NCBI GenBank assembly: GCA_965644315.1
Contig: CBFFRQ010000067.1
Coordinates: 1 to 64,000 of the forward strand
Origin: Caecitellus pseudoparvulus
Taxonomy: Eukaryota > Protista > Bigyra: Bicosoecida
Direction: 5' to 3'
Length of the DNA stretch: 64,000 bases
Below the pieces are notes generated by a model. That model did no database searches. It saw only the letters and a program-made list of their open reading frames with translations, and was not told the origin of the DNA. Numbering within the stretch: the stretch's first letter is position 1; every line of letters begins with the position of its first letter. The position numbers and the translations under genes are program-made. Shown here piece by piece: positions 1-18,643 of this stretch.

Positions 1-1210
1 TAACCCTAACCCTAACCCTAACCCTAACCCTAACCCTAACCCTAACCCTAACCCTAACCCTAACCCTAACCCTAACCCTAACCCTAACCCTAACCCTAAC
101 CCTAACCCTAACCCTAACCCTAACCCTAACCCTAACCCTAACCCTAACCCTAACCCTAACCCTAACCCTAACCCTAACCCTAACCCTAACCCTAACCCTA
201 ACCCTAACCCTAACCCTAACCCTAACCCTAACCCTAACCCTAACCCTAACCCTAACCCTAACCCTAACCCTAACCCTAACCCTAACCCTAACCCTAACCC
301 TAACCCTAACCCTAACCCTAACCCTAACCCTAACCCTAACCCTAACCCTAACCCTAACCCTAACCCTAACCCTAACCCTAACCCTAACCCTAACCCTAAC
401 CCTAACCCTAACCCTAACCCTAACCCTAACCCTAACCCTAACCCTAACCCTAACCCTAACCCTAACCCTAACCCTAACCCTAACCCTAACCCTAACCCTA
501 ACCCTAACCCTAACCCTAACCCTAACCCTAACCCTAACCCTAACCCTAACCCTAACCCTAACCCTAACCCTAACCCTAACCCTAACCCTAACCCTAACCC
601 TAACCCTAACCCTAACCCTAACCCTAACCCTAACCCTAACCCTAACCCTAACCCTAACCCTAACCCTAACCCTAACCCTAACCCTAACCCTAACCCTAAC
701 CCTAACCCTAACCCTAACCCTAACCCTAACCCTAACCCTAACCCTAACCCTAACCCTAACCCTAACCCTAACCCTAACCCTAACCCTAACCCTAACCCTA
801 ACCCTAACCCTAACCCTAACCCTAACCCTAACCCTAACCCTAACCCTAACCCTAACCCTAACCCTAACCCTAACCCTAACCCTAACCCTAACCCTAACCC
901 TAACCCTAACCCTAACCCTAACCCTAACCCTAACCCTAACCCTAACCCTAACCCTAACCCTAACCCTAACCCTAACCCTAACCCTAACCCTAACCCTAAC
1001 CCTAACCCTAACCCTAACCCTAACCCTAACCCTAACCCTAACCCTAACCCTAACCCTAACCCTAACCCTAACCCTAACCCTAACCCTAACCCTAACCCTA
1101 ACCCTAACCCTAACCCTAACCCTAACCCTAACCCTAACCCTAACCCTAACCCTAACCCTAACCCTAACCCTAACCCTAACCCTAACCCTAACCCTAACCC
1201 TAACCCTAAC
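1..1210. repeat. Terminal telomeric repeat (TAACCC)n = (TTAGGG)n on the minus strand
   Basis: Perfect uninterrupted hexamer array from base 1, ending ...CCCTAAC at 1210. The C-rich strand at the 5' end marks a left chromosome end. Confidence 0.99.
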
Positions 1211-1430
1211 TTTCCAAATGTCAACCTAATCATAGGTTGTCAAGGGCTAACATAGCCTAATCCAGGCGCTCGTGCACCCCATTGTGGTGTGCACAGTGCA
1301 TTTGCATTGCTTTAGGTGCGCGGGTGAGCGGCAGTGCGAATTCCGCACGCTACGCCTCCCCACGCAGTGCTTTGTGCGATTCTCTGCCGGATCTGCACCA
1401 CTGACTGCACCATACCATTGCATCATCACA

Positions 1431-4400
1431 ATGTCAACCAAGGCCAGCCAAATTCTCGGCGTGCTGTTCACGGAGAAGTGCCTGGAGCAGCATGTGTCAG
1501 GCCGGCCGAGAACAGGTGTGCTGACAGCCTTGCCACGCCGAGGCGCTGCTCGCACCTTCCGGCTGGGTGGAGTCGACATTGACCTGTCAGCTGCAGAGGA
1601 TGCAACATTCTTCGTTGGACAGTGGCTCGACATCTTTGGAGACCGTCTGGAAGCTGAGTTCCCTGGTGCCGTTGCCGCGCTGGCGTGCGCAAAATCCGCT
1701 CTGCGGGAATCCGCGCCAGGGCGAAAGGATCTCCTCGTGACGCTTGCGAGCGACAGCGACGGAGCCGCTACTGCCAAGTGTCTTCGAATTGCAGCCGCTG
1801 CCCGTGAAGACTTCACCGTCACCCTTCCCGGTGGAGGCTCTGTTGGTGTGGTGTACCCCAACACGAAGCAGTTCACATCAGCCCGCGCTAGGGTCAGCCT
1901 CATCGCGCCTCCATCTGCTGTGAAGGTGGCCCAGAAGATCTCCCAGACTGCTACTCGCATTGCTTCTGAAACTGGAGATGTATCAAGGGTGCTGAAGCTT
2001 GTGCACGCTCAGCTCACACATCAGCAGCCGAAGCCCCAGCGTACTGCCACGCACGTCGGACACTCCGTCTCTACTGTAGACGACGCCCCTGTCGACAAGC
2101 CTGCACTCACGCAAGACCGAGCCCCATCTAAGGCACCTGCCAAGACGAACAAGAGAACACGTCGTGGGAAGCGAACCTCTCGACAAACCCACGTGTTCCC
2201 GAAGACCTTCGCCGACATCATCCGCGGAGCAGCTGCTCATAACCAACCTGTACGGAAGACCACACCATCTTCATCCCAAGGCAAAGCCGTGCCTGAAAGT
2301 TGTCCAACTCCTGAGCATGTACGCCTGCCAACGTCTCGTGTCCAATCTCGGCCATCTCGGTGGGATTCCCCTGCACCACGTGCACCAGCTGCACAGGGTG
2401 CCACAAATGCTGAGAGCGACTCACCTGTCCCTACTGCAGCTGTCGATGAAGAAGATGAAAGTGACTTCTCGATAATCTCCCTTGAGACCTGCCACCGAAA
2501 GCCAGCAAAGCTTGCCAGCCACAAGCTTCCTGAAGAGTCGCCACTTGTAGGACTGTTGTCCAACTCAACAGTCTTCGGTGACGATGAAGACAAAAACTGT
2601 GTCCAGGCTTGCCTTGAATCGGCCTCGGGAGAACCCGTCCTTCAGGAGCAAGACTTTCTCCTCCTGCAGCATGCGGCGACGATCAATGCTGCCCAGAAGA
2701 GTCTTCTTCACATGCTGAAGCAGCGTCATGTACAAGATGCGGATTCGTCCAGCTCAGATGTTGTGATCACTGATGCTGCAGTTCTCCCGCCGCTCGAAAC
2801 TGAAGCAGACAGGCTGGAGGTCATGCGTTCCCTCGTGTACCGCTTTGCACCTTCCACACATCATCTGTCCCTTCTGTCTCCACCTGTGCTGCTGCCTGGG
2901 CTTGACCTCCTACTTGAGCGAATGGGAAGGGGCTACGCAATGTTGAAGAGCCCACCAGACTGGAACGGGAAAGGCATATCGCCGCGAACGCTGGTGGACG
3001 ATGCTGAACAAGACACATACCTTGAAGGGGTATTGTTTGCCTTTGGCCTGAGTCACCCACATGCAGCGACATGGGCCCATCTTCAACTCATTCTTGTTGA
3101 CCATGAGCGGGGCGTCCTGCATGTCTGGAATCCCACTCAACCCAAAGATCATCACGACATCCCACTCAACGCATGCATGGCAAGACTTCATGCAGAAGGC
3201 ATTGATACAGTCTACAGGATCTCCTCTGTACCAAACCATGGGATGGCCTCTCCTCTGCGTGATCGAATCAAGCAGGCACTGTGCTCCCTCCGTGCTGACT
3301 TCCCTCCACTCCCCTTCCTGGGACCGGATGGCAAGCTATACAGCCAGACATACATCGCAGCGAAGAAGGTCCGTGTGTGCCTCCCTGAGAATCGGCGAAC
3401 TCGAAAGCAAGCTGCTGTACTTGAGGAAGTCAAGCAACATGATCCCCTGCTTGAGTACATCCCGACACTAAAACACCACAAGCTGTCACGATGGAGCCCA
3501 AGTCCACCCACACCGGTTGGCAAGCATCAACGATGTCGCCTTGCGCTGGCATCATGGAACGTCCGAGGGTCATGTGGACGACGCCTACACGACGTGATAG
3601 AATGTGTGCAGTCCATCACAAGCCACACGTCTCTCCTTGCTCTCTGCCTCACCGAACCAGGTGGACGCGGGACCCTGGACAGTGCTGTCCTTGGTCTCGA
3701 ATGTTTCCGGCCCAACCCACCCGACCGTCCTCCTGGAAGAAGCGAAGTCGCCCTGCTGCTTGACAGACGCTTGAAGGCAACACCCATGCACAACTTGGGA
3801 CTTGATGGCAGATGCTCAGTGGCATGCTCAGTTGCAACACTCCCCCGGCCACTTGCAATCCTTGCGACATATGTCCCCAACTGGCATACTGCCCAACGCA
3901 AGAAACCTGTTGCTGATCCTGACACCAAGCTGCCTCACAGGCAGGAAGTGTGGCAACAGCTCTTTGATGCTGTCCATCGCCTCAAGCGCACACACATGGT
4001 GGTCCTTCTTGGTGACCTGAACTGCCACCCTGGCGACAACGGCATGAGATGCTGGACATCAGACATGTGGGTTAACAAGACGGAAATCAAAGACCCAACC
4101 CCCGATGTAAGTCAACTCGAAGAGATCTGCCTAGAAGGAGGTCTATGCCCTGCAGGCCTTGCAGGAAGCCCAACCCAAGCAAGGTATGGTAGGGTGCTTG
4201 ACCACATACTCGTCAGTTTGGATCTACGCAAGGTGCTTTGCCGACCTCTGCTTGTGACTACAACTTTTTCTGGGCATGGGCAGCGACGGACTGGCACGCG
4301 AGTTTTCAGTGACCATCACCTGCTTAGCACCGAGGTTCAGGTGAAGCTTGGTACACGATCTCACGCAAGAGCTCCACCAGCACGGCAGGCAACAGCTCCA

Positions 4401-7400
4401 CCCTGGTGGTCAGCAGCAACTGAGGAGGGGAAGGCGGCGCAGCAGACTTTCAGGACATGCCTCGATACGGTCATGAAGATAGATGAACCCCAGGAACTCC
4501 CTGCTGATGACTGGACTCTACAGCACATGAACACTATGATTGCCCAAGCTGCGAAAGAAGCTCACACAATCTCAAGAGTGGCCCAGACTGAGCTCCCACA
4601 ACCGCAAATGGCCATCCGAACCCAAAGCCGAGTAAAGAAACGTATGACAGCGCGAGTGTCGCTCATCAAAAGAACTCGAGAGCGGGTCAACCGGCGTCTG
4701 GTGCTGATCCAATGTGGAGGAGCGATGGCCCCAGCCTCTCTCAAACTCCGCGTCCAGGAGCAACTCTCAATGCTGGACGAGGATGAGAGCAGCTGTCTGA
4801 GGGAGAGAAAGACGGCAATGCGCACCTGCACCCGGCTCACTGCCAAGCTGAGGAAGAAGACCCTTGCTTGTGTCAAAGCGCGCATCAAAGACCTGGTCAA
4901 GTCTGACCCCTTCAAGGCACACGTGCACATTCGGCGGCTTTCAGGGAGGCCGCGCAACTCGGGCAGCTCGGCAATATCTTCAGTGATGACAGACACAGGA
5001 TCCCTCAGCTCAGATCCTGATACACTACGGCAAGAGGTGGCGAAGCAAATGGGTGCCATCATCAGCAAACCAACTCTCTCTCGCACACCACTGAAGTATG
5101 GACTTGGTCGATTCCTTCCTTCATCAACTCCGGAGTTCCAGCCCCCAGAAGACTGGCTTCCAAACACATCAGAGGTCCTCCGCTGTATGAATGCACTAAG
5201 CCTGCACCGCCACCCCGGCTCAGGAACATTTCAGGCGGAGCATATCAAGTATGCAAGCACACCCTTTCGCCTTGCATATGCTCAGACCTTGATCAACACC
5301 CTGTCAAGCGGATCGTGCCCTGAACCGTACCATGATGGAATAGGCACCCTGATCCCGAAGAAGACAAGCGAGGTGGGCCGGCCAGCAACTTACAGACTGA
5401 TTGTCTGCAGGCCAGCACCTGCAAAGCTGTTCTTCTCAGCAGTGGCGGCTTCCCTAGAAAAGTGGATGTCCAGCTGGATATCTCCTGAGCAGGCAGGCTT
5501 CACAGCCCGACGCAACACTCACGAACAAGTCATCGCTCTCCAAGAAGCAGTCAAAGGGCACTTGCGACACTCACCTTCAACTCGACAAGTCCTCATCCTG
5601 TTCGTCGACTTCAAAGGGGCGTTTGACTCGGTCAGCCATTCTTGCATCATGGAGATCCTCAGAGATGCAAACGTCCCTGCTCCGCTCCTCAGTCTTGTCA
5701 ACAGCTACATGCACAACGCAGCCGTCTCTATCAACACGGCAGCAGGACTCTGCCCCCCCCTGCGTGTCACAACGGGTGTTCCACAAGGGGGTGCTCTTTC
5801 ACCACTGCTTTTCAAGATTGCAATCGACGTTGTCTCAAAGCGTTTGGCAGAACTCCCATATCAAGGGGTCCAAGGCACTGGTATCTCAACTCCTGACGGA
5901 TACCTTACGCATACACTGTATGCAGACGACTTGGCGTGCTTAGCTACCACCCCATCAGGACTACATCGAATGTTCAAAGAGGTCAAGACGATTGGAGAAC
6001 GATCAGGGTTGCTGATCAACCCCAAGAAGAGTGGGGTCATGATCATCCCTGGTCGTGATGGGACTTCATCACAACACACCAGCGACAGACAGAAGGCCTT
6101 GTGGAGATCGAAGCACCTGAGAAGTGGTGAAGAGCTGAAAGTGAACGGCACGCCCATCACACGAACTCCCACGTACATGTACCTCGGGGTCCCCATGGCT
6201 GAAAACCTCATCCGGTCCAGAGCACTTGCACTTGAAAAAGCGCAGATGGCCTGCACACATGCTGGGTTTTCCTGCGGAGCGGTCTTCTCAGGGGCCTGGC
6301 TAGGAGTGAAGCTGAAGAACCAGATTGGAAGAGCCATTGTCACATCCTCAGCGGACTATGTCCTGTGCACACAAGCCAACAGCCTCTTGATACCTCTGCG
6401 GCAAGTTGACCGAGGTGTATCCAAAGCACTGAGCAAGAGCCTTCTCTGTACACAGAGCTCACTCATGAGGCCACACAGTGCCGCAACACTCACACTGTGC
6501 GGTATAAAGCCAGCTCACATCAGATCATCACAGCTTCGTGTGAACCTCTTCCGGAAGATGCTTGCACGCCTCCACGATCGCTCTCCCTTGGCAAAGTCCC
6601 TCCTTCTCACCATTCCCCAAGCCATCGACATGCTGCCAGCAACAATCTCGACCGCGTTCGTCGTCCAAAGCACCGTTCAACTACAGCACCATCAAGCCAA
6701 GCAAACTCCGCTCCCATGGGCCTTGTTTGGGATTCTTGACCTGTGGATGTATGGATGCTTGCCCGATCTGAACGATCTGAAAGATGCATGCCTGGCAGAG
6801 GAGTCACGAAAGCAGCAAGCACTCACAGCAGTTCTTACATGCCTGAAGAAGCCTCCACACTCTGCGAAGATCGAGGTGATGGGCGTTGCGATGCCACCCC
6901 TGGCAACTATGGACACCCCTCCACAGTTTCAGTCACTCTCATCTTGGCAGACTCGACACCGTGTGGTTGCCTCATACCTGCACGTCGTGCAAGCCAAGCA
7001 AAGCAGAGAGGCTGGCTACTCCACGTCGGCAAAACTCCCAAGCACCATCAAACCGCGCCCTCATCACGTTGGAATTGGAGCACAGCACTTTACCATGCTG
7101 CACCCAATCCCATCTGGGATCAGCCCACTCTTGTGGGCATGTGCCGAGGACAAGCCTCTCTGCAACATGGTTCATCAGTGGCAAACGCTCCAGCTTCTGC
7201 ACGGGGGGGATGAGCCTACACCGTACCCGACCTGTCCACTATGTGCTGATGAAGTCCTTAGAGATCTCCACTGCCACATCATCCTTCACTGCCGAAAACT
7301 CAACACACTGAGAAAATCAGCAGTAGCAAGGATTAGTGACCTCCTCCGTGAATGCGAGGAACAGACGCATTCAGCACGGACAACAGTTCCAATTCCCCAA

Positions 7401-7934
7401 GCTATCTCCAGCGCAATCCGTGCTTGCCTCAATCACATGCACGTACCTGAGGAGCATGAAGAAGTCATGTACCGCCTGATACTCTGTGGTCAGTGGCCAT
7501 GGTACTGGGGACACAGCACCGCATATCAACTAGTGTCCAGAGAGGAAGCTAGTGTGTACAGCTACCCATACATCCTACACCACAAAGGCCTGAGACGAGT
7601 ATCACCACCCCGCTCATGGAAGGAGCTCCAACGCCAAGCTGCAAAGTTTGCTGGGCAAGCATGGCGTGCGGTTGTGTCAGCCCTCTTGCGGGACAGGCAT
7701 CCTGACAGATTATCTGTGCATACTCACGCCAGACACCTCTGGTGGTCTGTGTTTGGACGTGATGCCCCCTTCCCTGGCCACACGATTCCTGAACCGTCCG
7801 CGGTCACGAAGCAAACTCGAGCACCCAAAGCGATACGAGTCAGACGGTTCTTCCCTGCTCGAGCAGGGCAGGTACCGTCACATGAAAGGAAAGTCCAACG
7901 TACACTCCATGACATAGTTCAAAGAAGAAGGTAA
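1431..7934 (+). CDS. Retrotransposon polyprotein: N-terminal domain, putative cysteine protease, APE endonuclease, reverse transcriptase, CCHC zinc finger
   Basis: APE motifs SWNVRG, LTEP, YVPN, GDLN, LDHI, SDH. RT motifs EQAGF, FVDFKGAFDSV, GVPQGGALSPLLF, YADD (5919-5930), INPKKS, YLG. Finger CPLC..H....C. ATG 1431 (MSTKASQILG) was chosen because it aligns with the copy 2 ATG; the frame is open from 1272. Confidence 0.95.
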   Translation: MSTKASQILGVLFTEKCLEQHVSGRPRTGVLTALPRRGAARTFRLGGVDIDLSAAEDATFFVGQWLDIFGDRLEAEFPGAVAALACAKSALRESAPGRKDLLVTLASDSDGAATAKCLRIAAAAREDFTVTLPGGGSVGVVYPNTKQFTSARARVSLIAPPSAVKVAQKISQTATRIASETGDVSRVLKLVHAQLTHQQPKPQRTATHVGHSVSTVDDAPVDKPALTQDRAPSKAPAKTNKRTRRGKRTSRQTHVFPKTFADIIRGAAAHNQPVRKTTPSSSQGKAVPESCPTPEHVRLPTSRVQSRPSRWDSPAPRAPAAQGATNAESDSPVPTAAVDEEDESDFSIISLETCHRKPAKLASHKLPEESPLVGLLSNSTVFGDDEDKNCVQACLESASGEPVLQEQDFLLLQHAATINAAQKSLLHMLKQRHVQDADSSSSDVVITDAAVLPPLETEADRLEVMRSLVYRFAPSTHHLSLLSPPVLLPGLDLLLERMGRGYAMLKSPPDWNGKGISPRTLVDDAEQDTYLEGVLFAFGLSHPHAATWAHLQLILVDHERGVLHVWNPTQPKDHHDIPLNACMARLHAEGIDTVYRISSVPNHGMASPLRDRIKQALCSLRADFPPLPFLGPDGKLYSQTYIAAKKVRVCLPENRRTRKQAAVLEEVKQHDPLLEYIPTLKHHKLSRWSPSPPTPVGKHQRCRLALASWNVRGSCGRRLHDVIECVQSITSHTSLLALCLTEPGGRGTLDSAVLGLECFRPNPPDRPPGRSEVALLLDRRLKATPMHNLGLDGRCSVACSVATLPRPLAILATYVPNWHTAQRKKPVADPDTKLPHRQEVWQQLFDAVHRLKRTHMVVLLGDLNCHPGDNGMRCWTSDMWVNKTEIKDPTPDVSQLEEICLEGGLCPAGLAGSPTQARYGRVLDHILVSLDLRKVLCRPLLVTTTFSGHGQRRTGTRVFSDHHLLSTEVQVKLGTRSHARAPPARQATAPPWWSAATEEGKAAQQTFRTCLDTVMKIDEPQELPADDWTLQHMNTMIAQAAKEAHTISRVAQTELPQPQMAIRTQSRVKKRMTARVSLIKRTRERVNRRLVLIQCGGAMAPASLKLRVQEQLSMLDEDESSCLRERKTAMRTCTRLTAKLRKKTLACVKARIKDLVKSDPFKAHVHIRRLSGRPRNSGSSAISSVMTDTGSLSSDPDTLRQEVAKQMGAIISKPTLSRTPLKYGLGRFLPSSTPEFQPPEDWLPNTSEVLRCMNALSLHRHPGSGTFQAEHIKYASTPFRLAYAQTLINTLSSGSCPEPYHDGIGTLIPKKTSEVGRPATYRLIVCRPAPAKLFFSAVAASLEKWMSSWISPEQAGFTARRNTHEQVIALQEAVKGHLRHSPSTRQVLILFVDFKGAFDSVSHSCIMEILRDANVPAPLLSLVNSYMHNAAVSINTAAGLCPPLRVTTGVPQGGALSPLLFKIAIDVVSKRLAELPYQGVQGTGISTPDGYLTHTLYADDLACLATTPSGLHRMFKEVKTIGERSGLLINPKKSGVMIIPGRDGTSSQHTSDRQKALWRSKHLRSGEELKVNGTPITRTPTYMYLGVPMAENLIRSRALALEKAQMACTHAGFSCGAVFSGAWLGVKLKNQIGRAIVTSSADYVLCTQANSLLIPLRQVDRGVSKALSKSLLCTQSSLMRPHSAATLTLCGIKPAHIRSSQLRVNLFRKMLARLHDRSPLAKSLLLTIPQAIDMLPATISTAFVVQSTVQLQHHQAKQTPLPWALFGILDLWMYGCLPDLNDLKDACLAEESRKQQALTAVLTCLKKPPHSAKIEVMGVAMPPLATMDTPPQFQSLSSWQTRHRVVASYLHVVQAKQSREAGYSTSAKLPSTIKPRPHHVGIGAQHFTMLHPIPSGISPLLWACAEDKPLCNMVHQWQTLQLLHGGDEPTPYPTCPLCADEVLRDLHCHIILHCRKLNTLRKSAVARISDLLRECEEQTHSARTTVPIPQAISSAIRACLNHMHVPEEHEEVMYRLILCGQWPWYWGHSTAYQLVSREEASVYSYPYILHHKGLRRVSPPRSWKELQRQAAKFAGQAWRAVVSALLRDRHPDRLSVHTHARHLWWSVFGRDAPFPGHTIPEPSAVTKQTRAPKAIRVRRFFPARAGQVPSHERKVQRTLHDIVQRRR

Positions 7935-8090
7935 AAGAAAAAACAAAGAAAAAAACACAACGGAGATGTTCAGTCATGCTCTGCTCCCTCAGACCCATCT
8001 CCTGCGACATCACCATCACTAACCCCGCCCCCCATCTGCCTAGACCACTCAACGTCCATGAGAACGCAAAGTCACTCACTCTACCTCCAA

Positions 8091-9454
8091 CACAAGGGCA
8101 AAGTAGCCACGCAGCGGCCCCGACGCCCATTCAACAGCATGAGCACGACTACTGCCTTGCCCCCCACTGAGCCCAGCCCGTACAGTACCACTGAGTGTCC
8201 CTCGCTGCCCTTCAGCGCCTCCAACAGAGCCGCACAAGGCCCCTGAGCCGGCCAGCAGGCCCCCCCACACAAGGGCAAAGTAGCGACGCAGCGGCCCCGA
8301 CGCCCATTCAACAGCATGAGCACGACTACTGCCTTGCCCCCCACTGGGCCCAGCCCGTACAGTACCACTGAGTGTCCCTCGCTGCCCTTCAGCGCCTCCA
8401 ACAGAGCCGCACAAGGCCCCTGAGCCGGCCAGCAGGCCCCCCACACAAGGGCAAAGTAGCGACGCAGCGGCCCCGACGCCCATTCAACAGCATGAGCACG
8501 ACTACTGCCTTGCCCCCCACTGAGCCCAGCCCGTACAGTACCACTGAGTGTCCCTCGCTGCCCTTCAGCGCCTCCAACAGAGCCGCACAAGGCCCCTGAG
8601 CCGGCCAGCAGGCCCCCCCACACAAGGGCAAAGTAGCGACGCAGCGGCCCCGACGCCCATTCAACAGCATGAGCACGACTACTGCCTTGCCCCCCACTGG
8701 GCCCAGCCCGTACAGTACCACTGAGTGTCCCTCGCTGCCCTTCAGCGCCTCCAACAGAGCCGCACAAGGCCCCTGAGCCGGCCAGCAGGCCCCCCACACA
8801 AGGGCAAAGTAGCGACGCAGCGGCCCCGACGCCCATTCAACAGCATGAGCACGACTACTGCCTTGCCCCCCACTGAGCCCAGCCCGTACAGTACCACTGA
8901 GTGTCCCTCGCTGCCCTTCAGCGCCTCCAACAGAGCCGCACAAGGCCCCTGAGCCGGCCAGCAGGCCCCCCACACAAGGGCAAAGTAGCGACGCAGCGGC
9001 CCCGACGCCCATTCAACAGCATGAGCACGACTACTGCCTTGCCCCCCACTGAGCCCAGCCCGTACAGTACCACTGAGTGTCCCTCGCTGCCCTTCAGCGC
9101 CTCCAACAGAGCCGCACAAGGCCCCTGAGCCGGCCAGCAGGCCCCCCCACACAAGGGCAAAGTAGCGACGCAGCGGCCCCGACGCCCATTCAACAGCATG
9201 AGCACGACTACTGCCTTGCCCCCCACTGAGCCCAGCCCGTACAGTACCACTGAGTGTCCCTCGCTGCCCTTCAGCGCCTCCAACAGAGCCGCACAAGGCC
9301 CCTGAGCCGGCCAGCAGGTCCCCCCACACAAGGGCAAAGTAGCGACGCAGCGGCCCCGACGCCCATTCAACAGCATGAGCACGACTACTGCCTTGCCCCC
9401 CACTGGGCCCAGCCCGTACAGTACCACTGAGTGTCCCTCGCTGCCCTTCAGCGC
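8091..9454 (+). repeat. 176/177-bp tandem repeat (about 7.7 near-identical copies) in the 3' UTR of copy 1
   Basis: Unit starts (CACAAGGGCAAAGTAGC) at 8091, 8268, 8444, 8621, 8797, 8973, 9150 and 9327. The length difference comes from a C6/C7 run. Confidence 0.97.
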
Positions 9455-9756
9455 TTGCAGCATGGTCAAGCTTGCTCTGCGCCACTCAGCGTGCGCCTGC
9501 GAAACGTGATGAGAGAAACACAGGGCGAAGCACGAATATTTTATCTCAGGCGGCATCAGAAGGTGCTTTTATACTAGCACGCAGTGGGTGAGCGCTGCTG
9601 CATGCAGCCTGCTGGTGTATGCGTCCACCTGATGATCTGCGTTTCCTGTGAAACGCTGCCACAATTTCCGCCCACGCACCTGCTCCCCAACGTCAAGGAA
9701 ATGCCTACCGGGTAAAAACTACGCCATTTTTTATTTCAATATTACATATTTCTCAT

Positions 9757-10082
9757 TGAATTATTGATGTTGAAATTTTGAATTTGAACGAATCTGGCAA
9801 ATTGCCTGCAGTGGGGGCAGTTCTTCACATACAAGTTCCGTGAATGACACCAAAACAAGTTCTCCATCCAGGACTCACAAGACCTTCCCACCCGGAGCGG
9901 ATACTGAAGTATCCTAGCACATGGCGACATATAGAACGGACGAAAGTCTGTGTTTGTTGCAGAGCCATGCAAATGGTAGCCATGCTGATGTGAGTGACCG
10001 CGTAACGGTTTGTAACATCTACTGTGAAGCTCCAGCTGAACCGCACATGAACAAGTGTGGAAGTGAAATGCATTACATCTGA
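9757..10082 (+). ncRNA. Conserved structured 3'-terminal RNA element of copy 1
   Basis: Stems GGATAC/GTATCC, CATGGC(9920)/GCCATG(9979), CGGAC-GAAA-GTCTG, CCAT-GCAA-ATGG and CCGCAC/GTGTGG. They covary with copies 2 and 3. Confidence 0.8.
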
Positions 10083-10132
10083 CTAACCCTAACCCTAACC
10101 CTAACCCTAACCCTAACCCTAACCTCCCTAAC
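10083..10132. repeat. Interstitial telomeric spacer (CTAACC)7 plus variant TCCCTAAC
   Basis: Directly visible between the 3' end of copy 1 and the 5' end of copy 2. Confidence 0.98.
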
Positions 10133-10351
10133 TTTCCAAATGTCAACCTAATCATGGGTTGTGCATTGCTAACATTGCCTAATCCAGGCGCTCGTGCACC
10201 CCAGTGTGGTGCTGCACAGTGTTTGGGTTGGCGGTGTGGCGCGCGGGTGGCAGCTGTGCGAATTCCGCACGCCATCACACCAGCGCAAGCAGTGTGCACT
10301 CCACGCGGGAGCCTGCACCTGAGGACACCTGCATCACGTTCCATCATCATC

Positions 10352-13300
10352 ATGGAAGCCAAGACAAGCCAAGTGTTGGGTGCGCTCTTTGTGGATAAGT
10401 GCATTGCTGCGCGAGCAATGCGTGGGCCACGAACAGGCGGATTTACTGACATGCCGCGCCGAGGCGCTGCACGGACGTTCCAGCTTGGCGGAGTGCCGAT
10501 CAACGAAGACCCTTCAACATCTTCATCAACCATTCGTGATTCTTGGCTTGAAGCCTACGGAGAGGCGGCGGAGGCCCAGTTCCCTGGCATCTGTGCGGAA
10601 GTTGGGCGTGGTGCAGTGGCGTTGCGCCGCCCACAAGGAGCCCCAGCTGCCCTGCTAGTCTCACTCGGTGGAGGGAGTGACAGCGCAGAACTGGCACGGA
10701 GCATGCGGGAAGCAGCAGCACGTGAGGACGACTTCACTGTGCGCCTTGGAAGGGGTGGCTTCTTGGCCGTGGTGTTTCCAAACACACGCCAGTTTGTCGC
10801 TGCCAAGGCCAAGGTCCAAGCCAAAGCGCCAACCCTTGTGCTCAACGCTGCCCGGGAAATAATGCCGCTAGCTACCAGCCTTGCAGTCAACACGGGAGAT
10901 GTGTCGTCTATCGTCACTCTCGTGAAGTCTCACTTGCGTCAAGCTTCTCCAGCTGCGCACCAAGATCGCCAACACGTCCGACAATCCGTCCCCAAGAAGG
11001 GAGATGCTGCTGTCGACAAGGCGCCCATTCGACACAACATCAAGACATCCGCACAAACCCAACAGGCTCCAGGTAAACGCAAGAAGGTCAGGCGTGGTCA
11101 GCGCTCCAAAGCAAGCACGGCATCTACACATTCCAAAGTTGTACCAGGGCGAACCTTTGCCGACCTGTTCAAGACGCCTCCATCAGAAACGACTGCCCGA
11201 GAGAAACACCAACACGTGGTGCCATCAAGTCCTCCTGCAAGAATGCCCAAGCTGCAGACGGAGGCGGTGGTGCTTCCATCGTCACGAGTGCGAACTGGGC
11301 AACAAACGCGCTGGGACAAGCCATCAACCCTTGACCAAGATTCGAAGATGCAGGCACCCGTGTCGGAGGACAGCATGCCTGCATCTCAGACAAGTACCTC
11401 CACAGCAACAACACTCATCCTGTCGCCACCTGCGTCAACCCCTGAGTCGATATCAGAATCAGACACCTCGCTCAGCCTGTCTGCACCTGAAGCTGCACCC
11501 CATCATACTGTGAAGGTTGTGAGGATGAAGGATTGCCCCCGAGTCCCTGGATCACTTCCCACCCATGACATTCCAGCATCGTCACCTCTCGCACGCCTGC
11601 TCGCTTCCCCATGTGTGTACGGGAACAGAGACCAACGGCATTGCGTACAGGCCTGCTTGGAAACAGCGGCAGGGGAGAAGGTTTTCGAGACTGAAGACCT
11701 CGTGCTTCTCCAGCATGCAGCTACTGTCGAGGCAGGACAGCGAGCCTATCGGAACCTGCGTCGTAGAGCTGCTGCAAACACATCGGACTCCTCCAGTTCT
11801 GATGTTCAGTGTACGATGCCAGCAGGCGGTGTCATGTCAGACTGCGCAGAGGATCAACTGGAAGCTCTTGCTCGCTTGCTGTTTCGCTTCACACCAGAGG
11901 ACTCCCTTCTGCAAGCACAAGCACCACCTGTCCTTCTTCCCGGTTTGCATATGCTTCTCAACCGCATGAACAGTGGGCACCGTGCCCTTCTTGGTGGGAG
12001 TAAACTCCATGGGGGCATCTGTCCTCAAGCAGTGATGTACGAGGACGGCCAAGACAAGTACTTCGATGGTGTTCACTTTGCCTTTGCCCTACATCGTCTC
12101 CAACACACTGACACTGCTCACCTTACGCTGGTTCTGGTCGATCATGATCGAGGAGTGTTGGTTGTATGGAACCCAGACATTGCAGATGCAAGTGTTGAAG
12201 TGCCCTTCCACAACTGCATGGAACGTCTGCACGCCGATGCTGTAGAAATGGTCTACCGAGTATCATCGACCCCCATGGTGGGATCTCCAAGCCCCTTGAA
12301 AGAAAGACTGCGCAATGTGATGCAGTCGCTGAAGCAAGACTTCCCCCCTCTCCCTTTTGCTGCGGAAGATGGGGAACTCCACCTCAAAACGTACATCGCT
12401 GGACAGTTCACCCGTGTTGCCCTCCCAACTGGACGCCTGACTAGACAGCAGGCTTCTGCTCTAGCAGACGCAAAAGAGCATGACCCACTACTGAAGCTAA
12501 TCCCGCAAGACACAGATACAATGCCTCCACGCTGGGAGCAAGGCCCGTGTACCCCAGTGGGAAAGTCAGCCACAACTTCCATCTCCATGGTGTCTTGGAA
12601 TGTTGCAAGCTCCTGTGGTAACCACCTCCACGAAGTCATAGTCTGTGCGAAGTCGGCCTCCTCTCGATCTTCAAAGATGGTGCTCTGCCTTACGGAGCCA
12701 GGCGGACATGGGACCTTGGACACGGAGATCATGGGTCTACAATGCTTCAGACCAGGTCCACCTGATCGTCCACCAGGACGAAGTGAGGTCGCCCTGCTCA
12801 TCGACAGAAGACTGCGGGCTCAACGGATGGGGGACCTTGGTCTTGATGGCCGCTGTGTTGTTGCTTGCACCATTCCCACAACGCCAAAGCCTCTTGCAAT
12901 CATCACGGCATATGTGCCTAACTGGCACACAGCGCAGCGAAAGAAGCCGTTAGCAGACCCAGATACAAAGCTTCCACACAGGCAGCAGATTTGGGAACAG
13001 CTCACGAATGCTGTTCAACATCTGAGGACAACCCACATGATCACACTCATGGGTGATCTGAACTGCCACCCAGGTCAACACGGGGTAGCTTCGTGGGACA
13101 CGTCATGCTGGCGCAACCAATCTGGCATCCCCGACCCGACGGACGACGTTCAGGAACTTGCGACTGTGTGTGAACAGGCACAACTTCAGCCTGCTGGAGT
13201 CGGGGGACAGCCCACCCAAGCTACCTTTCAGAGAGTCTTGGATCACATCCTCGTATGTCCCTCGCTGCGGTCGCGGTTGGTAAAGCCCCTTGCTGTTGTT

Positions 13301-16300
13301 ACAACATACTCAAGCGCCAGGAAGAAGAACCACCGAAAGATGATCCTCAGTGACCACCACATGCTCACTGCCGGTGTTGTAGTCAAGCTGCCCCCCCGAC
13401 CCAAAGCCTCAAGACAACCTCCATCGACCCACTCTGTCCCCCCCTGGTGGGCATCGTCCACACGTGAGGGACTCAAGGCGCAGTACATGCACAGACGCCA
13501 TCTTGATGCATCTCTTGGGCCAGCAGACCTGCATGTCCCTGGTACTGGAGATGAGGCAGAAGCACTCCAAAGCTTGGACGCCCTCATTGCTACCAGTGCT
13601 CGAACCACGCATGCCCAGTGCAAGTCCACATCGCCTCAAATGATTCAGGCATTTGCTGACATACCACGACTCAGCTCCCTGAAGAAACGCTTGACAGCCA
13701 AGACGAGGTCCATACAGAAACAACTTGTGAAACTCCGTCGGCGCAAGCATCTGCTGCGGCATTCCTCACTGCTTAGCTCGATCGAGGCTCTGCGCAAGGA
13801 GGAAGAGCGGGAACACATGCTGCTTCAAGACCTGCATGCGACGAGGACTGAAAGGAGGCAAGCGATGCGCAGGTGCACCAGACTCGTGGCAAAGAAGCAC
13901 AAAGCCGCGAAGTTCCAGGTACAGCACCGCATCAGGGAGCTTACACTGGCCGACCCATTCACTGCGCATCAACACATCCGGAAGTTGGCTGGGAAGAAGC
14001 GGAAAGGCACAGTGTCCTGCATCCAGTCAGTGCTCGATAGCAACGGGACACTCATCACGGAACCTGCTCTCGTTCGGTCCACGGTGCGGGACCACATGTC
14101 CCAAATCATCAGCTCCCCCCCTTTAGAGCTTGCCCCACTGAAGTTCGGTTTGGCCCGGCTGCTGCCGTCTGCACAAGATGCCACCGCCTCTCATGATGCT
14201 TGGGTCCCAAGTGTGGACCTCATCATGAGAAAGATTCAGTCACTCAACCTACACCGCAACCCTGGCACTGGAAGCTTCCAAGCTGAACATCTGAAGTACG
14301 CCAGTGAAACCTTCAGGAAGAAGTATGCTGTTACCCTCCGCCAAGCCATCAGCACTGGCTCCTGCCCTGAGGAGTACCACTGTGGCGTCGGGACTCTCAT
14401 CCCAAAGACCGCTAGCCAACCCGGACGAGTACAGACATACCGCCTCATTGTTTGTCGCCCACCTCAAGCCAAGCTGTTCTTCTCTGTGGTAGCAGCTTGT
14501 GTGGAAGACTGGGTCCAAAGATGGATCTCTCCAGAACAAGCTGGCTTTACTCATGCTCGAAACACGCATGAACAGATACTGGCACTACAAGAAACTTCTG
14601 CTGCGTATCTTCGAACAAAGCCGGACGCCAGTGTCCTCATACTCTTTGTTGACTTCAGAAGCGCCTTCGATACTGTCAGTCACGGTGCGATCATTGAGAT
14701 CCTTGAGAGCGCAAATCTCCCGAGCGCCCTACTCGAATGTGTGAAAGACTACATGCGGCGAGCTTCTGTTGCCATCCACACGGGGCATGGCCTCTGCAAC
14801 CCCCTGCCTGTGACAAACGGTGTCCCACAGGGTGGAGCCCTGTCGCCTCTTCTGTTCAAAATTGCCATAGACGTCCTCTCTCACCGGCTCAGAGAACTAC
14901 CAAAGCAGGGGGTGGCGGGTGCAGGAGTACCCACACCCCGAGGCCGAGTCACCCATACGCTGTATGCGGATGATCTTGCCTGCCTGGCTACCACACCAGC
15001 TGCCCTCCACCGAATGTTTCTCGAAGTCAAATCTGTGGGCAGTCGTGTTGGACTGACCATAAACCCCAACAAATCAGGTGTCATGATCTTGACTGGAGCC
15101 CAACATGTCAGGGGCATATCAGCAACAGAGAGACGAAAGCTGGTCTGGAGATCCCGCTGGATCAAGTCTGGGGAGATGTTGAAAGTAAAGGGGGCGCCCA
15201 TCCAACGTACGAGTGTCTACTCGTATCTTGGTGCCCCACTTTCAGAAAACTTCAGCCGCACCAGGCTGCTTGCCTTGAAGCATGCAACACAATCTTGCAC
15301 CCGGGCTGGCTTCGCCTGCGGTGCCCTCCTTAGTGGCGTCTGGCTTAGTCCAAGTCTCAAACAGCGGGTCGGTGCTGCAGCTGTCAACAGCGCCGCCGAC
15401 TACATCCTTGCCTCTCAGGTCAGCAACTCCGTGCTACCTCTTCGAGATCTTGACCGAGGACTGGCCATTGCCTTCTCTAAGGCCCAGCTTGGCATGCAGA
15501 GTTCACTAGCTCGGATGCACAACTATGCAAAGTTGGCTGTATGTGGCATTCTGCCAGCACACATCCGAGCGACAAGGTTACGCAGCAACATCTTCAAAAA
15601 GTTGCTGAAGAACTTGCACAGCCCCACGCCTATAGTCAAAGCCCTGTCATCCAGCCTTCATCAAGCCCTGCGCCAGCTTCCGCCCACCATGGACATGGCC
15701 TTTGTCTTTCAGGCCAATGTCCGCCTGGATAGGAAAGGACCGGGAGGAATTCCAGACCCATGGGCCCTGCACGGTCTCCTTGACCTTTGGCTACATGGTT
15801 GCCTCCCTGATCGCCGGGCACTTGAGGCAGCTTGCCAAGAGCCAGCCGCAGACTCATCACCCGAAGCACAGGGGATCGACATCCTTGCTCGGCTGGATCC
15901 CCCTCCCCCCAAGGTCCAACTCCTTGGACTTGCTGCCCCGGAGCTGTCAGACCTCTCACGACCCCCAACCTTCCCAAACAAGACCTCTTGGTCGATCAGA
16001 CAACATGTAGTCGCCTCGTTCCTCCATGTTGCACAAGCGGTTCAATGCCAAGAAGTTGGCTACACCACCACTGGCGAGATGAAGCGCTCAAGGCGGCCTA
16101 AGGAGTTCCACGTTGGGCTGGGGGCCTGCTTCTTCACATGGCTCCACCCCATCCCCTCTTCTGTGAACCCCCTCTTCTGGGTCCATGAAGATGACCAACA
16201 GAGTCGAGTCAAGATCCACCTCTGGCAAACGCTGCAGGTCTTCAATGGGGGAGACATCCCCACACTCTTCAGCGAGTGTCCCTTGTGTCATGGAGTTTCA

Positions 16301-17077
16301 TGGTGTACACTCCATGAACATGTCCTCTTTGACTGCCCTCATTATAAACTGCAACCATCGCGGACGGACGCGATGGTTGCAGTGCGGAACTTTCTTGAGC
16401 GGTCAAATGACGCGGTGAGGGGGGTGGCCAACGCCCAACACCTTGAAGTGCCCCCCCCCCTCCTTGATGCTGTCGTCCGGGCTGCTGAAGGCCGCTTTGT
16501 GGGCCGACCGGGTCGCTTGATTCTTCTTCGCCTGCTACTATGCGGCCAGTGGCCCCACCGGTGGGGCCAGCCTCCATCACAGCAGCCTTGGAGTCCTGAG
16601 GCGGCCGCAGTCTTGAGCAACCCTCATGCTGCTCTTCGCGGCCCCTCAGGTCTTCTCCGTCCTCCCAAGTACTGGAAGCAAGCTCTGGCTGCCGCCACGA
16701 GCTTCTCTGTATCTGCGTGGGACGTGCTGGTAACGTGTATGCTTGGACGTACCTCACAGGTTGATCGTCATATCCAGGTGCACGCCAGGTATCTCTGGTG
16801 GGCTGCACATGGCCGCACGAGTCCACTCCCGGGCTTCTCCACTCCTGATCCCAGCGCTGTGAGAAAGCATACACGACATGTTCGCACGCGGCGCTTTGAG
16901 CGAACTTACTTTCCTGTCAGGGCTGAGCGCAGGCCCCCTCGCTCCTTCACGAGGCAGGCCACTCTCCTGGACTTTGGCCTCACACGGCCCGAAGCCCGTG
17001 ATCACCCTCCATCGCCCTCTTCCAACTCGCCCACGTCCTCCGAGGTATCCCTGGAAAGTCCATCGTCCTCTGAATAG
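10352..17077 (+). CDS. Retrotransposon polyprotein, paralog of 1431-7934
   Basis: SWNV, LTEP, YVPN, GDLN, LDHI, SDH; FVDFRSAFDTV, GVPQGGALSPLLF, YADD (14963-14974); CPLC..H....C. Start MEAKTSQVLG at 10352; the frame is open from 10154. Confidence 0.95.
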   Translation: MEAKTSQVLGALFVDKCIAARAMRGPRTGGFTDMPRRGAARTFQLGGVPINEDPSTSSSTIRDSWLEAYGEAAEAQFPGICAEVGRGAVALRRPQGAPAALLVSLGGGSDSAELARSMREAAAREDDFTVRLGRGGFLAVVFPNTRQFVAAKAKVQAKAPTLVLNAAREIMPLATSLAVNTGDVSSIVTLVKSHLRQASPAAHQDRQHVRQSVPKKGDAAVDKAPIRHNIKTSAQTQQAPGKRKKVRRGQRSKASTASTHSKVVPGRTFADLFKTPPSETTAREKHQHVVPSSPPARMPKLQTEAVVLPSSRVRTGQQTRWDKPSTLDQDSKMQAPVSEDSMPASQTSTSTATTLILSPPASTPESISESDTSLSLSAPEAAPHHTVKVVRMKDCPRVPGSLPTHDIPASSPLARLLASPCVYGNRDQRHCVQACLETAAGEKVFETEDLVLLQHAATVEAGQRAYRNLRRRAAANTSDSSSSDVQCTMPAGGVMSDCAEDQLEALARLLFRFTPEDSLLQAQAPPVLLPGLHMLLNRMNSGHRALLGGSKLHGGICPQAVMYEDGQDKYFDGVHFAFALHRLQHTDTAHLTLVLVDHDRGVLVVWNPDIADASVEVPFHNCMERLHADAVEMVYRVSSTPMVGSPSPLKERLRNVMQSLKQDFPPLPFAAEDGELHLKTYIAGQFTRVALPTGRLTRQQASALADAKEHDPLLKLIPQDTDTMPPRWEQGPCTPVGKSATTSISMVSWNVASSCGNHLHEVIVCAKSASSRSSKMVLCLTEPGGHGTLDTEIMGLQCFRPGPPDRPPGRSEVALLIDRRLRAQRMGDLGLDGRCVVACTIPTTPKPLAIITAYVPNWHTAQRKKPLADPDTKLPHRQQIWEQLTNAVQHLRTTHMITLMGDLNCHPGQHGVASWDTSCWRNQSGIPDPTDDVQELATVCEQAQLQPAGVGGQPTQATFQRVLDHILVCPSLRSRLVKPLAVVTTYSSARKKNHRKMILSDHHMLTAGVVVKLPPRPKASRQPPSTHSVPPWWASSTREGLKAQYMHRRHLDASLGPADLHVPGTGDEAEALQSLDALIATSARTTHAQCKSTSPQMIQAFADIPRLSSLKKRLTAKTRSIQKQLVKLRRRKHLLRHSSLLSSIEALRKEEEREHMLLQDLHATRTERRQAMRRCTRLVAKKHKAAKFQVQHRIRELTLADPFTAHQHIRKLAGKKRKGTVSCIQSVLDSNGTLITEPALVRSTVRDHMSQIISSPPLELAPLKFGLARLLPSAQDATASHDAWVPSVDLIMRKIQSLNLHRNPGTGSFQAEHLKYASETFRKKYAVTLRQAISTGSCPEEYHCGVGTLIPKTASQPGRVQTYRLIVCRPPQAKLFFSVVAACVEDWVQRWISPEQAGFTHARNTHEQILALQETSAAYLRTKPDASVLILFVDFRSAFDTVSHGAIIEILESANLPSALLECVKDYMRRASVAIHTGHGLCNPLPVTNGVPQGGALSPLLFKIAIDVLSHRLRELPKQGVAGAGVPTPRGRVTHTLYADDLACLATTPAALHRMFLEVKSVGSRVGLTINPNKSGVMILTGAQHVRGISATERRKLVWRSRWIKSGEMLKVKGAPIQRTSVYSYLGAPLSENFSRTRLLALKHATQSCTRAGFACGALLSGVWLSPSLKQRVGAAAVNSAADYILASQVSNSVLPLRDLDRGLAIAFSKAQLGMQSSLARMHNYAKLAVCGILPAHIRATRLRSNIFKKLLKNLHSPTPIVKALSSSLHQALRQLPPTMDMAFVFQANVRLDRKGPGGIPDPWALHGLLDLWLHGCLPDRRALEAACQEPAADSSPEAQGIDILARLDPPPPKVQLLGLAAPELSDLSRPPTFPNKTSWSIRQHVVASFLHVAQAVQCQEVGYTTTGEMKRSRRPKEFHVGLGACFFTWLHPIPSSVNPLFWVHEDDQQSRVKIHLWQTLQVFNGGDIPTLFSECPLCHGVSWCTLHEHVLFDCPHYKLQPSRTDAMVAVRNFLERSNDAVRGVANAQHLEVPPPLLDAVVRAAEGRFVGRPGRLILLRLLLCGQWPHRWGQPPSQQPWSPEAAAVLSNPHAALRGPSGLLRPPKYWKQALAAATSFSVSAWDVLVTCMLGRTSQVDRHIQVHARYLWWAAHGRTSPLPGFSTPDPSAVRKHTRHVRTRRFERTYFPVRAERRPPRSFTRQATLLDFGLTRPEARDHPPSPSSNSPTSSEVSLESPSSSE

Positions 17078-17623
17078 GCGGGGATCTGTGCGAGACAAAG
17101 CGCAGAAGCAGGCAAGCTTACGTATGTATCGTGGTAAGAACCACGGTCGTGGTTGACTGCGAAGGCGAGGCTGCTACATGCGCTGTCCTTGATGCGTTGG
17201 TTATTCTCTGTGAAAAGTTGGAAGGTTATTGGAAAGTAAATGTTGTCCAGTATACGTACCTGATGTCTTCGGGGTCCACATGAAAGGTCCTCTGGCGGCT
17301 CCTGCGATGGTGCGGGCGGAATTTGGGAGCGTGAACAGGTGGGCGCAGCGGTGCAACGCCGCAGCGCGGAACTTACAGGTCCGCCAGGTCCTTGATTGAT
17401 GATGGGGCTGGGTCATCTGTGAACAAGGGAGCATGCTGGTGTGTTCTTGGTGGGCGGGGGGCGTTGTTCCGGCGGTGCGCGCTGCTACCACCGGCGTGGT
17501 GCAGTGCAACACCGCCGTGAAACGCAACCCCCCAAAGGCGGCCACCGAGGCTCAGTTCAGCGCGCAGTGGCCCCAGGCACACGTGCAGTGCCTGGCGAGG
17601 GCCAGGAGATATGGGGGGATTCA

Positions 17624-17932
17624 GAATTATGATGCGAAGTGTGGACTGGGACGAAGTAAGAGTGGGCCCGGCCCCCTCTGGCTCAGCCGACTGAGCCGAG
17701 AGGGCGCGGGAGGGACAGTTCAGCACGTATGGGCGGGCGCGGGCGCGCCCTAGCAAGCGGCGGCTTATACAACGGACGTATGTCCGTGATGGCTGCAGAC
17801 CCACGAGAGTGGGAGCCGCTGTGGTGCCTACTACAGTGCATTCGTGTGCTGTGGTACGCAAGGCACCACGAGTGATGCCCAAGCTGTACCGTGCAAGAGT
17901 GTGCGGAGGCAAGTTGCAATGCATTGAGTGAG
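17624..17932 (+). ncRNA. Conserved structured 3'-terminal RNA element of copy 2
   Basis: Stems AGCGGC(17756)/GCCGCT(17815), CGGAC-GTAT-GTCCG, CCCAC-GAGA-GTGGG, GTGGTGCC/GGCACCAC and CCGTGCA/TGTGCGG, then AATGCATT. Confidence 0.8.
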
Positions 17933-17956
17933 CTAACCCCTAACCCCCTAACCTAA
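17933..17956. repeat. Degenerate telomeric spacer (CTAACCCC TAACCCCC TAACC TAA)
   Basis: Telomere-variant units with irregular C-runs between copy 2 and copy 3. Confidence 0.9.
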
Positions 17957-18275
17957 AAGGTGCAGAGAAGTGAGTTGGATTATGATGTGAAGTGCTGATT
18001 GACGAGCGCGCCACCTGGATGGACTCTCTGTGGTGTGGTTCAAGCTGGTCAAGGACGGGACTTTCTCCCCACAGGGCGTGCGTAGGACACGCCCTAGCAA
18101 GCGGTGACCTCTACAACGGTCGCAAGACTGTGTTGGTTGCAGATCCACGCAAGTGGAAGCCGCTGCAGCGCTTCTGCAGTGCATTCGTGCACGGCAGCGA
18201 GCGCCGCACGTGACGCCCAAGCCGAACCGCGCAAGTTGCAAGCGTGGATGTGAAGTGCAATGCATTGAACAGCTA
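17957..18275 (+). mobile_element. 5'-truncated relic (3' terminus only) of a third retrotransposon copy
   Basis: Aligns with 17624-17935: ATTATGATG.GAAGTG, CGCCCTAGCAAGCGG, TGCAGA.CCACG..AGTGG.AGCCGCTG, CAGTGCATTCGTG, TGCAATGCATTGA...AGCTA. Confidence 0.88.
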
Positions 18276-18643
18276 TGGCGTTTTGGTATGTATGTATAGC
18301 CGTTTAGGTGCAGGGCAGGTCATGGGCGGCTGCTGGGCGCCGTTGCGGGCAGGCGTGGCGACATGGTGGTGAGGCTCACACAAATGCCGCGCCGCACGGA
18401 GACCCCATACACCCTGAAGTAATTGAATTCATAGTTCTTGGCGGGTGACACAATCAGAAAGAATTCAGGCTTTCTTGGCGGGTGACAACAAGAACCAAAA
18501 GAATGCAAAGAAGATCAAGCACACAGGTCTGCAATCTGCAGAGTGTTCCTGTGCACTGGATCTTTTTTGTATCCTTCTGAAGGAGAGAACTGAACCTACG
18601 TTGCACGTATCCATTTCTTCGCTCAATGTGTCTGCGCAGTTGC

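Follow-up and report, generated by a model that had tools for sequence, protein, structure and literature searches.

Telomeric retrotransposons and the Caecitellus array

Telomere-specialised retrotransposons are central to thinking on the relationship between telomerase and retroelements and on the replacement of telomerase in Drosophila. Such elements are on record from insects, a lizard, two fungi, Giardia, Chlorella and rotifers, and a 2023 list of them has no stramenopile entry (PMC10088271); a literature search for stramenopile telomere-specialised retrotransposons found no report either. The 64,000-nucleotide stretch of DNA analysed here (the window) comes from Caecitellus pseudoparvulus (Bigyra: Bicosoecida; assembly GCA_965644315.1, contig CBFFRQ010000067.1, positions 1-64,000) and opens with a head-to-tail array of long interspersed nuclear elements (LINEs). 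Their single open reading frame (ORF) encodes, in this order, an L1-ORF1p-like RRM, a Josephin-like papain-fold protease domain, an apurinic/apyrimidinic endonuclease (APE), a reverse transcriptase (RT) and a CCHC motif. These elements probably represent a telomere-specific APE-type LINE family in a telomerase-positive stramenopile, added to chromosome ends by priming from the 3' end of the G-rich strand.

In anatomy, the nearest counterparts are MoTeR1 and MoTeR2 of Pyricularia oryzae and FoTeR of Fusarium oxysporum, for which a near-identical arrangement has already been described (PMC7367193, PMC12857005). Like the Caecitellus family, they occur only at telomeres of telomerase-positive hosts, are arrayed head to tail with their 5' ends facing the chromosome tip, leave half a repeat to a few repeats between neighbours, are followed at the 3' end by TAACCC and not by poly(A), have a shorter partner with common 5' and 3' termini, and include truncated copies healed at short in-phase seeds (PMC7367193, PMC12857005). 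Two features that mark membership of the MoTeR/FoTeR type, short telomere tracts between array members and a partner sharing both termini, are thus found here. However, MoTeR and FoTeR are CRE-clade elements with a restriction-like endonuclease at the C-terminus, whereas the Caecitellus APE is N-terminal; MoTeR2 has no conserved protein, whereas the short Caecitellus element encodes a conserved protein of 694 amino acids; the tandem variant-repeat block at the 5' end of the fungal elements is absent from the Caecitellus family; and the RRM and protease module of the latter has no equivalent in the fungi.

HeT-A, TART and TAHRE of Drosophila are APE-type LINEs, among which the Gag-only HeT-A depends on an RT-encoding relative. 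They too lie head to tail with the 5' end outward, as a result of chromosome-end addition (PMC13534243, PMC5537684). Several lineages coexist in both hosts, and a Gag-only partner is also found in Caecitellus. In Drosophila the tails are poly(A), gag and pol form two distinct ORFs, the RT is of the Jockey clade and telomerase has been lost, whereas in Caecitellus TERT is intact, long perfect repeats cap the arrays, and telomere repeats, not oligo(A), stand at the junctions. TRAS and SART of Bombyx (R1 clade) and Tx1-1_ACar of the anole are likewise telomere-repeat-specific APE LINEs of repeat-keeping hosts, with a fixed orientation and junction phase and a 3' untranslated region (UTR) needed for retrotransposition (PMC4700185, PMC10088271); they differ in having two ORFs, a poly(A) tail and a sequence-specific nick inside long arrays, compared with one ORF and no poly(A) in Caecitellus.

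The endonuclease-minus Penelope-like elements Athena and Coprina are also terminal, and their 3' reverse-complement telomere repeats are thought to pair with the G-overhang (PMC8557442). Their RT is of the Penelope-like/TERT-like kind, and they have no endonuclease and carry hammerhead ribozymes, whereas the Caecitellus elements combine a LINE RT with an APE and have no Rfam ribozyme. Zepp of Chlorella has a poly(A) tail, and the Gil elements of Giardia are of the restriction-like endonuclease type. The L1-like Zepp and GilM/GilT are further protist or algal LINE-like telomere stacks (PMC10088271), and neither has the Caecitellus module order. A cysteine protease is encoded by other non-LTR elements (elements without long terminal repeats), namely NeSL, Utopia-1_TSP (Ulp1 protease) and Dualen (PMC4640811); these are restriction-like endonuclease elements whose protease is Ulp1-like (clan CE), whereas the Caecitellus element is APE-only and its domain resembles the papain/Josephin fold (clan CA).

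The Caecitellus family is therefore like MoTeR1/2 and HeT-A/TART in anatomy and like the Athena and Coprina elements in its tail, and it is distinct in lineage. The original prediction that it matches no described element stands insofar as no close relative is found among 1.84 billion representative proteins; its conceptual novelty was overstated, since the fungal arrays are so similar and endonuclease-minus Penelope-like elements are already known to pair a reverse-complement telomere tail with the G-overhang (PMC8557442). What is joined here are features formerly seen only apart. An APE-type LINE ends in a telomere repeat and not in poly(A), deeply diverged lineages have a covarying RNA structure at the 3' end in common, autonomous elements are accompanied by a Gag-only partner, and an ORF1p-like RRM is fused to a papain-fold protease; the host of all these has an intact telomerase.

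Three outward-facing units at the chromosome tip

All features of the array lie on the forward strand, and all three units have their 5' end outward, toward the chromosome tip. The tip itself is a perfect telomere tract at 1-1210 ((TAACCC)x201.7, 100% matches), the C-strand reading inward. It adjoins unit 1 (1210-10082, 8.87 kb). A 49-nt internal telomere-repeat tract starting CTAACC (10083-10131) separates this unit from unit 2 (10132-17932, 7.8 kb), which belongs to a different subfamily; both units are full-length and autonomous. A degenerate telomere tract of 24 nt (17933-17956) then leads to unit 3, a 5'-truncated copy of a third subfamily that consists of the 3' UTR only (about 17959-18275, the last ~315 nt). 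Unit 3 runs to about 18272, ends GAACAG plus CTA (18273-18275) and abuts unique subtelomeric DNA; it matches the 3' end of a full-length copy from a metagenome. The layout first described, with three 5'-outward units parted by telomere repeats, is thereby borne out base by base.

Units 1 and 2 open with the identical 5' sequence CTTTCCAAATGTCAACCTAATCAT. In unit 1 the 5' UTR (1210-1430, by alignment) bears CTAA/CCTAA motifs in its near-invariant first ~95 nt and is followed by a single stop-free ORF of 2167 amino acids (1431-7934). The ORF of unit 2, also single and stop-free, has 2241 amino acids (10352-17077) and begins at the start that alignment shows to be common to both units; the ATG at 10154 given in the ORF listing was rejected, as by the same alignment it falls in the 5' UTR. 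The two proteins are 45% identical over 2228 aligned positions, so both frames are intact despite strong divergence, as had been proposed. Within the array, a tandem repeat of 177 bp (7.7 copies, 99% matches) is restricted to the 3' UTR of unit 1 (8090-9454), where it recalls the variable-number tandem repeats reported in FoTeR.

The structured, conserved part of the 3' UTR occupies 9883-10082 in unit 1, including an unpaired tail with a palindrome around AATGCATT, and 17740-17932 in unit 2. The copy of AATGCATT at 10067-10074 is followed by 8 nt and then by CTAACCC from 10083, and the one at 17918-17925 by 7 nt and CTAACCC from 17933, exactly as first described. The palindrome core lies at 10066-10075, 17917-17926 and 18258-18267, with 10 nt (CAATGCATTG) in units 2 and 3 and 8 nt (AATGCATT) in unit 1. 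A poly(A) tail was sought throughout 1210-18300, where the longest A-run is 7. The 5' and 3' termini are unrelated in sequence, and there are no long terminal repeats.

Confinement of the family to chromosome ends

The host genome of 30.6 Mb is assembled in 215 contigs, has about 60% GC and is intron-poor. The HSP90 that it encodes shares about 74% identity with those of oomycetes and diatoms, which marks the host as a stramenopile. Genome searches, which score the best candidates only, place the family exclusively at contig ends. With the unit 2 RT as query, 73/73 matches lie at most 22 kb from a contig end, with the 5' end facing that end, and the same terminal, co-oriented pattern is given by an N-terminal query of 690 amino acids (72 matches), a distant-relative query (39 matches) and two 3' UTR DNA queries (54 matches). 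A covariance model of the 3' UTR (R1) extends this to 150 scored matches on 65 contigs, all 150 terminal and co-oriented: the 122 on the plus strand are within 29.4 kb of a contig start, and the 28 on the minus strand are no more than 20 kb from a contig end, as measured on contigs of known length, a set that excludes C13 and C137. No internal or inverted copy was seen among the best-scoring candidates. The family is thus confined to chromosome ends with the 5' end outward, and the random dispersal that had been named as grounds for abandoning the proposal is not what these searches show.

About 66 contig ends carry the family, including those of the megabase contigs C18, C68 and C69. At sampled ends, the 5' ends of elements directly adjoin terminal tracts of CCCTAA repeats that are 0.3-4.7 kb (288-4719 bp) long. 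The 895-kb contig C89 has family 3' ends at ~8533-12208(+) and 893866-893991(-), both elements pointing outward, and is probably a telomere-to-telomere chromosome. In an independent data set, metagenome contig ERZ23495255 contains a full-length copy with the same termini and telomere repeats on both flanks.

A telomere unit at the 3' end of the element

In all, 51 of the 3' junctions were sampled, 50 of them unique. In 51/51, ATGCATT is followed by 6-8 nt and then by CTAA(CC), even where unique DNA comes next, and poly(A) was present in 0/51, in agreement with its predicted absence. Because the CTAAC(C) unit is kept at junctions with non-telomeric DNA, it is part of the element, which upholds the proposal that the 3' end continues into telomere sequence.

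The tract behind the 3' end is generally short, with a median of about 12 nt and no more than 20 nt at 39 of the 50 unique junctions. It measures 4-7 nt at 15 of these, where unique DNA or a 5'-truncated element comes next, 9-20 nt at 24, 27-37 nt at 5, and 57 nt or more at 6. Copies agree in their 3' end but not in their 5' breakpoint; at the truncation boundaries that could be mapped (n=10), an in-phase overlap of 1-2 nt occurs in 10/10. One junction is identical on contigs C18 and C30. The shortest copy seen is a 3'-end remnant of about 23 nt (GAGGTGAAATGCATTACGATTAG) that lies between two telomere tracts on contig C145 (~32700-32760) and is present at a second locus too.

Conserved termini and a covarying 3' RNA structure

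Across subfamilies with only 35-62% protein identity, the first ~95 nt are near-invariant, and a 3' RNA structure of about 190 nt is also held in common, with 11 helices and 49 pairs, 97% of cells being paired compared with 26-48% in slid controls. Compensatory changes affect 25 pairs, against 10.8 +/- 2.1 in shuffles (0 of 500). The final ~25 nt are unpaired and contain the 10-nt palindrome CAATGCATTG, which may serve for RNA dimerisation or for protein binding. A relative at 35% protein identity keeps, of the 3' end, only the terminal motif plus CTAACC. An Rfam scan of 1205-18400 (E <= 1) gave no match, hence no known ribozyme.

Domains of the polyprotein

The proposed single-ORF architecture of protease, APE, RT and CCHC motif is recovered, the APE and RT by Pfam, the papain-fold domain upstream of the APE, and the Cys-His motif at the C-terminus. 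In unit 1 the APE (Exo_endo_phos, 44.7 bits) spans 3549-4316 and the RT (RVT_1, 101 bits, with YADD at nt 5919) spans 5352-6164, followed by the Cys-His motif CX2CX10HX4C at 7233-7292; the corresponding positions in unit 2 are about 12680-13357, about 14399-15106 (RVT_1, 104 bits) and 16277-16336. On these ORFs Pfam finds only the APE and RT, with no restriction-like endonuclease, the C-terminus being the CCHC motif. The APE catalytic residues E, Y, D, N, D and SDH are invariant in the alignment, even in relatives of 34% identity. Searched against PDB, the RT matches R2 and L1 ORF2p RTs best; the APE profile, even at E = 10, reaches only weak ExoIII matches and not the TRAS1, R1Bm or L1 endonuclease chains.

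The N-terminal 690 amino acids have no Pfam match and no PDB sequence match, and their domains were assigned from structure models. The RRM-like domain of unit 1 (1521-1862) was located through its homology with residues 31-144 in the model of the short-element ORF, a segment that aligns with the human L1 ORF1p RRM over 97 residues (Z 6.9). The putative papain-fold (Josephin-like) cysteine protease domain spans 2493-3290. Its model (pLDDT 72.9, pTM 0.73), searched against 48,161 chains, matches Josephin-2 (Z 7.9) and the ataxin-3 Josephin domain (Z 7.8, 167/181 residues aligned), and the top 50 fold matches are nearly all papain-fold cysteine peptidases. The candidate triad of unit 1 consists of Cys (CVQAC, nt 2598), His (AHL, nt 3075) and Asn/Asp (VWNP, nt 3123); among 6-7 sequences down to 19% identity the Cys and His are invariant, with an Asn or Asp 14 residues past the His. 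The Z values are middling, and it is the uniform match list together with the conserved candidate triad that points to this fold, in which case the domain would presumably act as a protease. A Ulp1/C48 protease, the lead of an Atlas feature search (0.80), was rejected because the Cys after the His is not conserved in distant members; instead the upstream Cys is invariant and the fold search gives papain-like proteases.

A Gag-only partner and larger relatives

The autonomous elements are accompanied by a partner of 2.93 kb with the family's 5' and 3' ends and a single ORF of 694 amino acids, which comprises the RRM-like and protease module (42% homologous to the N-terminal module of the autonomous elements) and lacks both APE and RT. 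At least 30 equally scoring, near-identical copies exist, often in tandem with CTAA alone between them, as on contig C43 (1183-4110 and 4111-7040), and two adjacent copies show 2 differences in 2928 bases. The partner presumably uses the RT of the autonomous elements in trans.

Giant relatives, also terminal, have single ORFs of 2779-3724 amino acids and an RT about 35% identical to that of the family, and they end GCAATGCATTGAACTTC|CTAACC. They lie at C42:706639-714700(-) and C147:53537-57457(-), with one more in SRR24000141; their additional N-terminal ~1400 amino acids have no Pfam match. Distant members (32-33% identity) occur in the coral metagenome ERZ922783 and in SRR24000141, where the contig opens with three CCCTAA repeats and the element is oriented likewise.

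Lineage, selection and host telomerase

In the RT tree, which was built without named Repbase-type clade references, all family members form one monophyletic group on a long stem (SH-aLRT 99, stem 0.8). Metagenome proteins and a single plant L1-like protein with zf-RVT are the closest outgroups, at a weak support of 87. An E value below 1e-30 is reached by only 9 of the 1.84 billion representative proteins, mostly family members; public relatives amount to one at 57% and two at 32-33% for the RT region, and one at 97% for the short ORF. By these comparisons the family appears as a new, sequence-isolated APE-LINE lineage. In the RT, the ratio of nonsynonymous to synonymous substitution (dN/dS) stays at 0.07-0.16 at all depths, also for pairs with dS 0.06-0.10; several lineages are therefore under selection and active. 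Open frames exceeding 2000 amino acids occur in at least 13 copies.

A check for TERT, suggested alongside the original prediction, finds the gene present: Telomerase_RBD (73.7 bits) and RVT_1 lie in an uninterrupted open frame of 1389 amino acids at C77:24238-27642. Judged from this frame, the host keeps an intact TERT gene.

End-primed addition and its alternatives

The outward orientation, the element-encoded telomere unit and the telomerase caps are consistent with target-primed reverse transcription that starts at the G-strand 3' end. Under this model, the RNA of all members would carry the structured 3' UTR of about 190 nt ending in CAATGCATTG, 6-8 nt and CUAACC, the expected transcript end being ...CAAUGCAUUG, 6-8 nt, CUAACC(n). 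The 3' RNA structure would be bound by the RT, and the CUAACC tail would base-pair with the G-rich strand at its 3' end, or simply lie against it, for the most part where a chromosome end has become nearly repeat-free. The chromosomal DNA end would then prime reverse transcription, and the cDNA would extend the chromosome with the element's 5' end outward. Telomerase would re-cap the new end with repeats, whether the copy is full-length or eroded, and repeated rounds would build the head-to-tail stack. Given that the family does retrotranspose to telomeres, end-priming at short ends is somewhat the better candidate for the mechanism, an APE nick is distinctly less probable, and mixtures of the two take up the remainder.

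The nick would operate as in TRAS and SART (PMC4700185), with the APE cleaving the G-rich strand at TTAG^GG within duplex repeats, so that target-primed reverse transcription proceeds inside the tract and the terminus is not the primer. Such a route would account for the retention of all APE catalytic residues at 34% identity, the purifying selection on the ORF, the fixed 3' junction phase with its invariable CTAA start, and the full-length copies with telomere repeats on both sides. However, random nicks in tracts of 288-4719 bp predict proximal tracts of hundreds of bp, whereas at 39 of the 50 unique junctions the tract does not exceed 20 nt, and at 15 just 4-7 nt separate the element from unique DNA or truncated elements. 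Because the acceptor tracts are so short, addition to nearly repeat-less ends, a form of healing, is favoured over random nicks in long tracts, and as a full explanation of the family the TRAS/SART-like route is unlikely. The retained APE does not decide the question, as TART and TAHRE keep theirs while adding to chromosome ends. Several observations nonetheless weigh against end-priming. The RNA 3' end is deduced from DNA junctions alone; elements that only primed from ends would not require a conserved and apparently active APE, which suits a TRAS-like nick instead; short internal tracts may also result if interstitial repeats, known to be fragile in the blast fungus (PMC7367193), contracted later; and a few internal copies could have been missed when only the best candidates are scored.

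Recombination also accounts for part of the copy number, as seen in the junction shared by C18 and C30 and in the tandem short elements with 2/2928 differences. The same two observations, together with the subtelomeric DNA past the innermost element that is common to C67 and C42, would suit arrays that are mostly relics, distributed among chromosome ends through recombination of subtelomeres or break-induced replication and seldom renewed by retrotransposition today, and break-induced replication does expand MoTeR arrays (PMC7367193). That origin is very improbable for the family as a whole in view of the 50/51 unique 3' junctions, the copies (at least 13) with intact ORFs above 2000 amino acids, the RT dN/dS of 0.07-0.16 even at dS 0.06-0.10, and the 5' truncation points that vary among copies. 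Mis-joining of telomere reads to dispersed repeats during assembly is hardly credible: it is true that repeats make assembly difficult and that many of the contigs concerned measure only 8-60 kb, yet the same anatomy recurs on about 66 contig ends, including those of megabase contigs, and on an independent metagenome contig, and the junctions are base-precise and phase-consistent.

A further, tentative extension of end-primed addition is that the LINE family acts as a back-up end-healing system, in which elements are added preferentially to nearly repeat-less ends that telomerase then re-caps; the one-repeat RNA tail and the dedicated structure at the RNA 3' end would enable the RT to prime from the bare G-strand. 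As part of the same conjecture, the Gag-only partner and the several autonomous lineages in one niche may amount to an independent HeT-A/TART-like arrangement that predates telomerase loss. If true, this would be a re-invention of the Drosophila arrangement before telomerase is lost. With several active lineages and many unique junctions, the choice between an endonuclease nick and a bare-end primer is directly testable in this family.

Subtelomeric surroundings of the array

The DNA just inside the innermost element (window 18290-18350, ATGTATGTA.AGCCGTTTAGGTGCA...) recurs on contig C42 at about 705380-705440, and this shared DNA is a common subtelomere block that begins at nearly the same point on C67 and C42. 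Farther inward, the neighbours of the array are a PIF/Harbinger-type DDE_Tnp_4 ORF (36991-38832, minus strand), a Sel1-repeat protein of 1136 amino acids (39375-42785, plus strand) and an ORF of 1805 amino acids (18644-24061, minus strand), whose repeats of 24 amino acids (72 nt) resemble leucine-rich repeats in appearance.

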